Shown: piece by piece, positions 34,701 to 37,700 of the stretch
Layout of the letters: each line of letters starts with the position of its first letter
Position numbering within the stretch: position 1 is the stretch's first letter
Assembly: GCF_964204865.1 (NCBI RefSeq)
Contig: NC_135262.1
Span: forward strand, 8,990,001 to 9,054,000
Length of the DNA: 64,000 nt
Direction: 5' to 3'
Origin: Styela clava
Taxonomy: Eukaryota
Translations under genes and position numbers: made by a program
The notes under the pieces: generated by a model
Told to the model about the DNA's origin: nothing
Seen by the model: the letters and a program-made list of their open reading frames with translations, nothing else
Databases searched by the model: none

Positions 34701-37700
34701 TTTCAGGGGCCACAATGGAAGGCGTGACAAGCCTAATTGCAGCTCTCAATCAATCTGCAGCTGAAACCAAGCGATTGGTGCCAAATTTCTACGACTACGT
34801 TTATGATTTTGATGGAAATGTGCAGAATTATATTAAAGATGGCGGACAGGATATGTTTGACACCGGAAATAAGGTAATGAATAAATAATCTAGCAAAATG
34901 TATAGCAATATACTTATTTAGACAATATTATTTGTTAAATAAATGTATGTCAATATGAAAATAAAACAATGAGCTGAAAACCTAAAATTTGTAATTTGTC
35001 AAATCAAAGTGTAATTTAAACATTTATTTTTACAATTTATTTTATTTTTATTGCAGTTGTTTTATCGCATTGGAAGCAATCCTGAAACACAAATTACTTA
35101 CAACACTAATTACAGGTAGGAAAACTTTTTGTACTTACTTTGAAAACCATTAATGCATAAATCTAAAAAATAGATACTTGAGCTGTTTAATCAAGTCAAC
35201 GTAAAATAAAAACAACTAACGAATCAATAAATCACTGATTTATGTGTGTCTATATTCCAGAAACCGAAGCCAAGGTGTCGATTTATTAGCTGCTACATCG
35301 CATCCGTTTAATCTTCTCATGTGGATCGGGAATGACGGAGGTGCTGTAGACATGTTCTCGCTCAAGGTATTATCAGGGACTGGTGCCGATGGAGATGGTT
35401 CCTCGCGTACACGAGATGGCACTATTACACAAGGAGATTTTACTTTGGTCTATCATGCTTACAGCGTATACGGCGCAAGTGATCCATCTATAAGCGAAGT
35501 TTTCTACTACATTACCAATACTAATGTAAGCTTATAGTGCATGGTGGTTTTGTTAATTTTTGTTTTTATATTTTAAACAAATGAGCTTACAATTAAATTT
35601 TTGCGTACACTGTTAATACAAGAGAGCTAAGATCAAATATGTGGACACGGAGGGCAAACCTAATATTTTATAATCACTTCCCCGAAAATCATATGCGGTA
35701 ACTTACCAGTAACCGTAACTACAAGAACAACAACAACATAGTAACAAAACGATCCCAAGGTACTCTTTGTCTAATAGATTGATCGAAAATCGATCAAATT
35801 GTAACACAAAATGAATTTTAGAACAATAGTTTTTTTAATTTTTAAACAATGATAAATTATGAATTTCTACTCTTTTTCATTCTTGTTGAAGTGTGAAATA
35901 TTTATGATAAAGCCAGGAGGTATCTTGCTTCGAATACAAACAATGTCGATTGAACATGGAACGCAAAATTACTACTTCTGTTTCATCTAGATTCTAGACG
36001 CATTGCTTACTAGATATTACCGATTCTATTTCCAGACCTGGCAGTCACGAGCCCCCACAGCCTTTACTAAAAATCCTTGGAGTGGAGGAACCGATTCTTT
36101 ACAGCATGGTGTTGTAGTTAGCGGTGGTCCAAAGTCAATTCTCATGGGCTACACTCTTTTGTCTCGGTTTGTTATAACTATTTATTTTAGAAATAATGTG
36201 TTTGAGGCGTTTTTTTAACGCTGAAAATGCTTGGAAAGATGTATTTGGCGAGTATATAGAATTAAAGGTAATAAAGATAGTTATTTAAATAGAACAATTG
36301 CATAATCTTTCAAGTATAGCTAATTATTTCGGATTATATATATACGGTATGATTACGCTCGATTATACAATGAGTATATCTTGAAAGTTTTGAAAAAAGA
36401 GGTGTTCATTCCTTATAATAGAGTGCTTATACCTTTTTTTCGACCAAACACTTTTTTTAATGAACACTGACTACTACTAAATTTGACCAGAAATCTGGTA
36501 TTTTTGGGCAGCTAGTTTTAAACATAGATTAGAATGTTCGCATATAATAAGAGCAACCTATGAAGTTCATATTCATAAATGTTTTCTAGTATTGAATCCG
36601 TCAAGGTAAGTTTAGCTGATATACGATAACACTCAATATTTTTTTTCCAGTACCAGTGATGGCGAAGTCGATGAATCAAGTATTAGGGCTGTATTGAACA
36701 GGACTTTAACAGAAATCAGTAACTTCGGAAAAATCGATGGTACTCATATGCTTCTTATAACTATTCATATAATTTTTCTGCCTGCCAATTTTCTCCACGC
36801 TTGGTGCATATTCAACATAGGATATGAATTCTGAAATCATGCTTGGCCATGCAATATGTATCTATATATCTATGTGGCAGCGCATTCTGGATTATTTGAG
36901 AAAAATTATTAAACTTTGCATAAGGGATAAACTCAGAAATTATTATGGCAAAGAAAATAATAAAATTATTTTATGGCTGTATATTCACAAGAATTATTCA
37001 AATTAATGCTATTCTGATTATTTTTACGCGTAGAGCATGAACAGTGTCGTATCGTATGACTTATTTTCTTTGAAGTACGGAAGCTGTATCGGAAAAAACA
37101 ACAACATGTTTATCCGGCCTTAACATGACCCGTGATGTTTTTCACGATTCAAATGAAATGACTACACATAACACACAATTAAAGTCATAACATGCAATAT
37201 CTCAGTGAAGACAAGTAGGGTATTACAAGTTATTCACCGTAGCATTAACAAAAAAACTTATAAGTTATTGAAAAATTCAATTTTTAAACAATTCAAGCAA
37301 GCGGTCATAAATTGCTTTGAAACACAAGAAGACATATGAATAAATCTTGATTTCTCCATTCATAGAATTCAACTGCAGTCGCCTGGAAGAATCGCTAGTA
37401 CAACCCGTCTTATACCTCCAAGGAAACAACGATGAAGTACTGAATAAAATACCCCCCGTTGCCAAATCGCAAACGACACCAGGTTTCTTGCAATTCAGAG
37501 CCTACAGCCCCACTGGTATTCCCAATGCATTGTGCCCCGGAGTGAAGTGAGTAGAGTCAGATACAAAACTATACTAAATTTCTAAATTTGAATATATAAA
37601 AATCCATACACATTTCGTAATAATCAACGAATTAACTTTCAGAACTGAAGCATGCCGGTCTCAATCAGTTTGCATCGGAGGAGTAAACACAATGGCTAAC

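Follow-up and report, generated by a model that had tools for sequence, protein, structure and literature searches.

Intelectins are usually treated as compact single-domain lectins with one conserved mode of reading microbial sugars. The best points of comparison for the gene described here are human intelectin-1 (PDB 4WMQ/4WMY) and Xenopus XEEL (4WMO), the ficolins and collectins, in which a collagen stalk is followed by a C-terminal recognition head, and, for its gene structure, the classical phase 1-1 exon shuffling of extracellular modules such as Ig, EGF, Kringle and Sushi (Patthy's rule). The gene, LOC120332903 of the ascidian Styela clava, lies in a stretch of 64,000 nucleotides (the window; C17:8990001-9054000 of the 377 Mb assembly) and appears to encode a secreted collagen-stalked intelectin whose domain is split by a nested module. 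Its protein, P0075, resembles human intelectin-1 and XEEL in the GGGWTLVAS start, the HENxxxGxCTxGD motif, the Cys positions and the C-terminal LIFTR, but differs from them in a foreign domain of 237 amino acids, in the collagen-like stalk, and in having R/Q/S/N in the ligand columns. With the ficolins and collectins it shares the order of leader, Cys-rich start, Gly-X-Y stalk and fibrinogen-related head; unlike the ficolins, its head is an intelectin rather than a ficolin-type FReD, and it carries a nested domain.

P0075 (628 amino acids, 15 exons) fits the window over its whole length, with 627 of 628 residues identical and one substitution. The region was first translated in each frame, after which the database protein was walked along the window; exons were searched singly, and whole-protein comparisons were made with database proteins. 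Exon 7 ends with an 11-residue string plus one nucleotide at position 33993, a phase-1 donor. The five exons that follow comprise 167+59+265+131+89 = 711 nt, or 237 codons, corresponding to residues 266-502 of P0075, and the introns 5' of exon 8 and 3' of exon 12 are both in phase 1. The original prediction, made from the DNA letters alone, had placed a five-exon, 711-nt module without Cys between exon 7 and EFNCSRLEE, with phase-1 introns on both flanks; the exon chain of P0075 bears this out, including the exon numbering, residues 266-502 contain no Cys, and the two motifs that it had singled out (a 14-residue string and GTGADGDG) are both present in the translations. Because both borders are in phase 1 and 711 nt is a multiple of three, skipping of exons 8-12 would keep the frame, as had also been predicted.

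The interruption is apparent in the comparison with known structures. In a phmmer search of the PDB, residues 104-260 of P0075 align to residues 31-186 of human intelectin-1 (4wmq_A) and residues 512-595 to residues 197-281; the gap between the two aligned stretches measures 10 residues in the human chain versus 251 in P0075, in agreement with the earlier claim that the flanking segments are contiguous in human intelectin-1. The split of the intelectin match is also visible in an alignment of 21 sequences. The best PDB matches are XEEL (E 8.4e-57) and intelectin-1 (E 1.8e-56), and Pfam Fibrinogen_C is matched at 5e-09. P0075 thus has the fibrinogen-like N-terminal lobe with a GGGWTLVAS core that marks an intelectin, while the uninterrupted domain of about 280 residues is replaced by a match split by 251 residues. 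A 13-residue string of P0075 fits HENxxxGxCTxGD, given as the consensus of the structural calcium site of intelectins in PMC9682848, and this motif is kept in 14 of 16 insert-bearing intelectins. The hydrophobic N-terminal leader reads as a putative signal peptide, and the stalk matches Pfam Collagen at E 3.1e-05 (24.1 bits, under the cut-off of 27.2 bits).

The five module exons are spliced into mRNA. In contigs of four sequencing runs from three studies, GT..AG joints are present at all exon borders of the gene: the joints 33993|34707, 34873|35057, 35115|35261, 35525|36036 and 36739|37366 were found in all four runs, and 36166|36651 in three of them. A 1835-nt contig (run X6, record 16) reads from exon 4 through the module exons to exon 13, and records of runs X1 and X3 read from exon 4 to exon 10, bridging intelectin and module exons. 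The RNA nature of the runs was guessed ('RNA?'), spliced contigs being what RNA gives; over 32250-38150, the stretch in which they were compared, the runs hold about 0.29 of the sampled words, and exons make up approximately the same share. That the five exons are an annotation artefact, a separate gene nested in an intelectin intron, is extremely improbable: nothing beyond the unusual architecture speaks for it, the single contigs that bridge intelectin and module exons refute it unless they are chimeric in three separate studies, and the same arrangement is found at five other loci plus one more. Very improbable, too, is a regulated cassette, in which the working lectin would be the skipped intelectin of ordinary length and the long form a minor or regulatory product. 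The phase-1 borders and the frame kept on skipping would allow it, and the contigs, from which 15 of 23 joints were listed, hide rare forms; yet the six long-form junctions occur in three or four of the four runs, the exon 7-to-13 joint (33993 to 37366) that the original prediction proposed to look for was not seen among those 15 of 23 joints, the module is included in the gene model of RefSeq and in those from four other species, and the skipped product would still be devoid of the N-x-E-H ligand residues. The coordinates of the gene and of a neighbouring repeat are given in Table 1.

Table 1. Features of the nested-module intelectin gene (positions in the window).
Feature	Position	Strand	Remarks
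Exon 1	31734..31886	+	Start codon, hydrophobic N-terminal leader, Cys-rich N-terminus of P0075
Exons 2-3, collagen-like Gly-X-Y stalk	32287-32358, 32445-32496 (32287..32496)	+	Exon chain; spliced joints in 4/4 runs
Exons 4-7, intelectin part 1	32939-33060, 33204-33339, 33468-33559, 33825-33993 (32939..33993)	+	Aligns to 4wmq_A 31-186; structural calcium motif
Module exon 8, 167 nt	34707..34873	+	DGGxDM[FY]DxGN motif; phase-1 acceptor, phase-0 donor
Module exon 9, 59 nt	35057..35115	+	Phase-2 donor
Module exon 10, 265 nt	35261..35525	+	HPF, GADGDG, DPS motifs; 106+159 nt as two exons in paralogues
Module exon 11, 131 nt	36036..36166	+	Ends GYTLLS; phase-2 donor
Module exon 12, 89 nt	36651..36739	+	Module C-terminal stretch; phase-1 donor
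Exons 13-15 with stop, intelectin part 2, from EFNCSRLEE	37366-37546, 37643-37728, 37976-38088 (37366..38088)	+	Aligns to 4wmq_A 197-281; ligand-site columns R/Q/S/N
Dispersed repeat of ~310 bp, intron 7, non-coding for P0075	34150..34460	.	Genome search

The insert is one copy of a domain of about 220 amino acids that occurs as an autonomous unit in other architectures. Exon 10 alone (88 amino acids) matched 64 of 1.84 billion representative proteins at E<=1e-3, and an iterated hidden Markov model (HMM) of the module, of which the window module covers positions 2-222, delimits between one and eight full copies per protein, with seven in Ciona intestinalis P0001, eight in Phallusia P0002 and four in Clavelina P0003; in P0027 (250 amino acids) the module stands almost alone. 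The family is marked by the ordered motifs DGGxDM[YF]DxGN, HPF, GADGxG, DPS and [YL]LLS, all of which are held by the window module. In ascidian proteins it is accompanied by CUB, Sushi and Ig domains and a membrane-spanning segment, and in environmental proteins without an organism name by Kringle and WSC domains. Database searches gave no name for it: single module exons had nothing above threshold in Pfam (the only row being MLPTv-like_HTH, E 0.23), whole P0075 had no Pfam match within the insert, module proteins had none in PHROGs or NCBIfam, the best PDB match of P0027 (MIC-A, E 0.017) was rejected as chance, a viral profile of the domain (A3) reached only E 4.8 in the PDB, and in the ESM Atlas P0027 scored at most 0.83, which is chance level, and P0134 had no usable match, the Atlas containing a model of neither. 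The absence of Pfam, NCBIfam, PHROG and PDB matches supports the original view of an unnamed domain within an intelectin, and the sequence comparisons support assigning the insert to a discrete domain family, so far unnamed.

Kinship with FG-GAP or VCBS repeats was considered and rejected. A 27-residue stretch of exon 10 is 36-46% identical to single FG-GAP or VCBS repeats over 28-39 residues; this one repeat-like stretch amounts to under a fifth of the module. Six of the 64 proteins matched by exon 10 are multi-repeat proteins that match the short stretch (the two checked in Pfam, P0014 and P0025, are FG-GAP proteins), and the module HMM kept none of them. Neither the module exons nor P0075 had an FG-GAP match in Pfam, and the tandem repeats of such proteins were not found in the module.

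The strongest evidence for exon shuffling, and strong evidence in itself, is the recurrence of the cassette in a non-intelectin gene. P0096 (LOC120342439, C3) has two modules, weak Ig-domain matches and a membrane span; each of its modules is divided into six exons (155/59/100/162/131/80 and 155/71/100/159/131/80 nt), with phase-1 introns at either end and 0,2,0,0,2 as the internal phases, and every surrounding exon (~290-310 nt) is phase 1-1. The cassette phases of P0096 recur in the intelectin genes P0005 and P0078, and the 59-nt exon 9 recurs in both and in the first module of P0096. In the window module, which has five exons and the internal phases 0,2,0,2, an internal intron has been lost, 106+159 nt having become 265 nt (100+162 in the first P0096 module), so that P0075, P0005, P0078 and both modules of P0096 have the pattern [1]0,2,0,(0),2[1] in common, with phase-1 borders on both sides in the three intelectin genes and the two P0096 modules. 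The module is therefore a mobile cassette bounded by phase-1 introns, and since equal borders and internal phases occur twice outside the intelectins, the insert is best explained by exon shuffling, the origin that had been predicted. It resembles classical phase 1-1 shuffling in its borders and in its reuse beside Ig, CUB or Sushi domains, but differs from it in that the unit spans five or six exons whose internal introns are conserved, and in that it lies inside a folded domain and not between domains.

When 66 modules were placed in a tree, the 16 borne by intelectins grouped as a single clade (SH-like approximate likelihood ratio test, SH-aLRT, 92) nested among the free modules; duplicates from isoforms or clusters, and modules that the HMM covered only in part (including P0021 and P0083), were left out of this tree and of the 52-row tree described below. 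The monophyly of the intelectin-borne modules, together with an identical insertion point in five species, indicates one old insertion. We hold this account of the anatomy and evolution of the nested-module intelectin with high confidence.

An organism name was available for 15 of the 30 proteins looked up, and all 15 are ascidian (Styela clava, Ciona intestinalis, C. savignyi, Phallusia mammillata and Clavelina lepadiformis); the other 15 are metagenome or metatranscriptome entries without an organism name. For non-tunicate animals, a word-index search with residues 148-591 of P0007 returned five proteins, three from Clavelina, one from Phallusia and one without an organism name, and the absence of the module from other animals is drawn mainly from the 88-residue search with exon 10. 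Intelectins with the insert at the identical point are encoded by Styela, the two Ciona species, Phallusia and Clavelina. The insert, which the original prediction had described for this gene while proposing a survey of other intelectins, is therefore confirmed as a feature but not as one peculiar to the window gene: it is shared by at least seven Styela loci and by four further ascidian species, and public gene models already contain it without remark. In addition to the window gene, the Styela loci are located at C8:15.57 Mb, at C17:10.94, 11.25, 11.29 and 11.30 Mb, and at C1:27388000-27397999 (27.39 Mb; L087). The last of these has matches to exons 5, 6, 7, 8, 11 and 13 and none to exon 10, and may be divergent or decayed. 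As the GGGWTLVAS exon has at least 35 matches in the Styela genome, insert-bearing genes are a minority of its intelectins. In four insert-bearing intelectins (P0078, P0082, P0022 and P0018), a hydrophobic membrane-type segment was noted in place of the collagen-like stalk.

RefSeq and UniProt already list the long proteins under the names 'uncharacterized', 'Fibrinogen C-terminal domain-containing' or 'Cortical granule lectin-like', the intelectin paralogue P0005 on C8 being XP_039250619.2. The insert goes unmentioned in the accessible portions of the ascidian and Ciona intelectin literature covered, including PMC10980280, PMC7002689, PMC9434060 and PMC9682848, a selection outside which fall the main comparative and Ciona intelectin papers and their supplements. 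The window gene combines a known lectin family with an unnamed domain family.

Relatives of the module are also encoded outside the tunicates. A search with full-length P0005 also found P0095, a 530-amino acid metagenome protein (E 7.7e-7), and 358 relatives of its C-terminal 256 residues were identified at E<=0.001. In hhalign, the tunicate-type domain matches the viral-type domain with a probability of 99.7% (E 6.9e-27, 192 columns, 29% identity), and the tunicate-type HMM, which includes environmental sequences without an organism name, matches all 120 viral-type proteins at E<1e-3 when the database size is set to 5.77e9. Relatives are encoded at 56 IMG/VR loci, on contigs as long as 436 kb, with identities to the query of 35-66% in the first 48 of the 56. 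Among 185,579 bacterial and archaeal genomes a single match was found, on a 1,187-base contig of a metagenome-assembled genome, and a search with P0212 against 50,697 records of cultured phages gave no match. Judged by this sequence similarity, the tunicate module family has a homologue in a domain encoded by uncultured viral contigs: the two are alike over ~190 columns and in the order of their motifs, while the viral domain has no introns, is more conserved, and has extra loops and an invariant DPSHC.

In all 16 viral-type proteins of one alignment the domain is C-terminal, and the N-terminal parts of the viral-type relatives vary (Laminin_G_3, which is ConA-like, Ig_3, or a Gly-rich domain). 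More divergent viral forms exist, one of them internal in an open frame of 4802 amino acids, whose 4772-residue protein, counted from the first Met, contains eight Laminin_G_3 stretches, Big_2 and FG-GAP. The neighbours of the viral genes, which do not discriminate between large phages and giant viruses, encode a glycosyltransferase, proteins with weak 'virion structural' and collagen-like 'tail fibre' PHROG matches, DUF7483, Cohesin, Collagen, a ribonucleotide reductase small chain, and a large methyltransferase/glycosyltransferase fusion. One IMG/VR locus (L028, 8384-20074) has five consecutive frames of ~760-785 amino acids on one strand, of which only the first ends in a module-like domain; they resemble a cassette of fibre genes with different heads. 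At other IMG/VR loci (L062/L064/L065 and L075-L078), two adjacent frames each have a copy of the domain, as tandem-duplicated viral genes.

A tree of 52 rows was constructed from 32 chosen tunicate-type, 8 main viral and 12 divergent viral domains. The tunicate-type modules are found on one side of a branch of length 1.29 (SH-aLRT 100) and adjoin the domain of the viral 4802-amino acid frame (support 83); the root may lie on the same long branch, so the tree leaves the direction of transfer undecided. We consider it rather doubtful, although conceivable, that the module originated as a binding domain of viral proteins, which was captured by an early tunicate through horizontal transfer, gained introns, multiplied in surface and secreted proteins found only in tunicates, and entered an intelectin in a single shuffling event, after which the sugar site of this intelectin decayed. 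If so, a subfamily of chordate immune lectins would recognise its targets via a domain of viral origin, and the module would join cellulose synthase among the foreign genes that have shaped tunicate biology. Lamprey intelectin is described as 'transferred from phage transposons' in PMC9682848, a statement that concerns the intelectin itself and not the module.

The canonical sugar site was scrutinized in the insert-bearing proteins. We take the ligand-site residues of human intelectin-1 to be Asn260, Glu262, His263, Glu274 and Trp288, with Asn260, Glu262, Glu274 and His263 at the ligand calcium. All five residue types fit the 4wmq chain at an offset of 7, and the lamprey lectin has its ligand residues at Asp279, Glu281, His282 and Glu293 (PMC9682848); the offset fit and the matching spacing support the human residues indirectly. 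In P0075 the residues aligned with Asn260, Glu262, Glu274 and His263 are R, Q, N and S, so that the ligand-binding calcium residues are not present; N/E/H/E is found in three of the five vertebrate rows. The equivalent of His263 is kept in none of the 16 insert-bearing intelectins, that of Glu262 in three and that of Asn260 in four. In contrast, the insert-free Styela intelectins at C2:19.39, C5:17.16 and C16:16.57 Mb, which are 47-57% identical to the first half of P0075, keep N-x-E-H in all three cases examined.

A complete extracellular domain of about 220 amino acids is nested between the two halves of an intelectin fold, possibly in a surface loop as the original prediction had it, and we propose that it may act as a ligand-binding unit (adhesion or lectin-like, possibly calcium-dependent). 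Because P0075 is without the Asn-x-Glu-His and Glu residues that hold the ligand calcium in vertebrate intelectins, the nested module probably determines or reshapes what this protein recognises, while the collagen stalk and the intelectin scaffold would supply secretion, oligomerisation and multivalency. The reading of the module as a binding unit is suggested by its pairing with adhesion and lectin-type domains in viruses and tunicates, by tandem arrays of up to eight copies, and by conserved positions that are Asp, Asn and Gly loops. As a whole, a collagen-stalked intelectin with a nested ligand-binding module is a probable explanation of the locus; the binding role taken by itself is put forward tentatively, at somewhat less than even chances.

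Alternatively, the module could be a catalytic domain, for example one that cleaves or modifies glycans like the depolymerase heads of viral fibres, which would make the chimera a lectin-tethered enzyme. Residues D70, N73, D137 and D168 of P0027 are invariant or nearly so in the tunicate-type alignment, the viral type has an invariant His and Cys in DPSHC, and the domain is C-terminal in most of the viral-type proteins aligned, a position at which enzymes are sometimes found. We nevertheless regard a catalytic role as quite unlikely, as an enzyme would not usually be present in seven or eight tandem copies per protein, the tunicate type does not keep the viral His and Cys (DPSISE stands at this place in the window), and no enzyme family is matched in Pfam, NCBIfam or the PDB. 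It is likewise unlikely that the module is a ligand-free spacer or oligomerisation block that alters the geometry of the protein, with the intelectin binding via its own remodelled site. The structural calcium motif and the Trp288 equivalent, kept in 14 and 12 of the 16 insert-bearing intelectins, would fit such a role, and Xenopus XCGL-1, which binds galactosides with a changed pocket (PMC9434060), indicates that intelectin pockets can alter their specificity; against it, the conservation of four motifs from viruses to tunicates and the many partner domains argue for an intrinsic activity of the module.

Several observations weigh against a nested binding module that arrived by exon shuffling and took over from a lost sugar site. 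The idea of calcium or glycan binding is drawn from the appearance of the motifs and from the neighbouring domains, PDB sequence and profile searches with the module were blank, and the Atlas look-ups were at chance level or gave none. For the human ligand-site numbers, the support is the indirect one given above. Three insert-bearing intelectins keep Glu262, two of them also Asn260, so that site loss is not universal among them; the loop with the Glu274 equivalent is poorly aligned, and the Trp288 equivalent is kept in 12 of 16 (MAFFT). Contigs lose rare variants, so that a skipped isoform of low abundance is possible, and the RNA label of the runs is a guess. Finally, all three insert-free Styela paralogues examined are continuous across the insertion point, a single open frame running on without an intron, so that a recipient intron of matching phase was not found in these relatives and recombination into a pre-existing phase-1 intron is at most a possible route. 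These paralogues (L084, C2:19391500-19401499; L085; L086) were seen to have far fewer introns in the intelectin domain, with the equivalents of exons 5, 6 and 7 in one alignment block; one L084 block holds a stop codon, and this copy may be broken or have an intron there.

The locus represents a conserved ascidian subfamily with a split intelectin fold, most of whose members are without the canonical ligand residues. It offers an experiment of nature on the way in which a lectin scaffold accommodates a nested domain and acquires a new specificity, and a clean case of a multi-exon cassette landing in a folded domain. The unnamed family is common to tunicates and uncultured viruses, and naming it or solving its structure would annotate many proteins of both groups now listed as 'uncharacterized'.

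Intron 7, upstream of the module, contains a dispersed repeat of ~310 bp (Table 1). A search of Rfam with this repeat gave no match; a first look at the genome gave 2965 candidates, of which 40 were scored, and the copies, 76-84% identical, are spread over many contigs of the assembly. In the contigs of the runs, the repeat shows high contig depth with loose ends.

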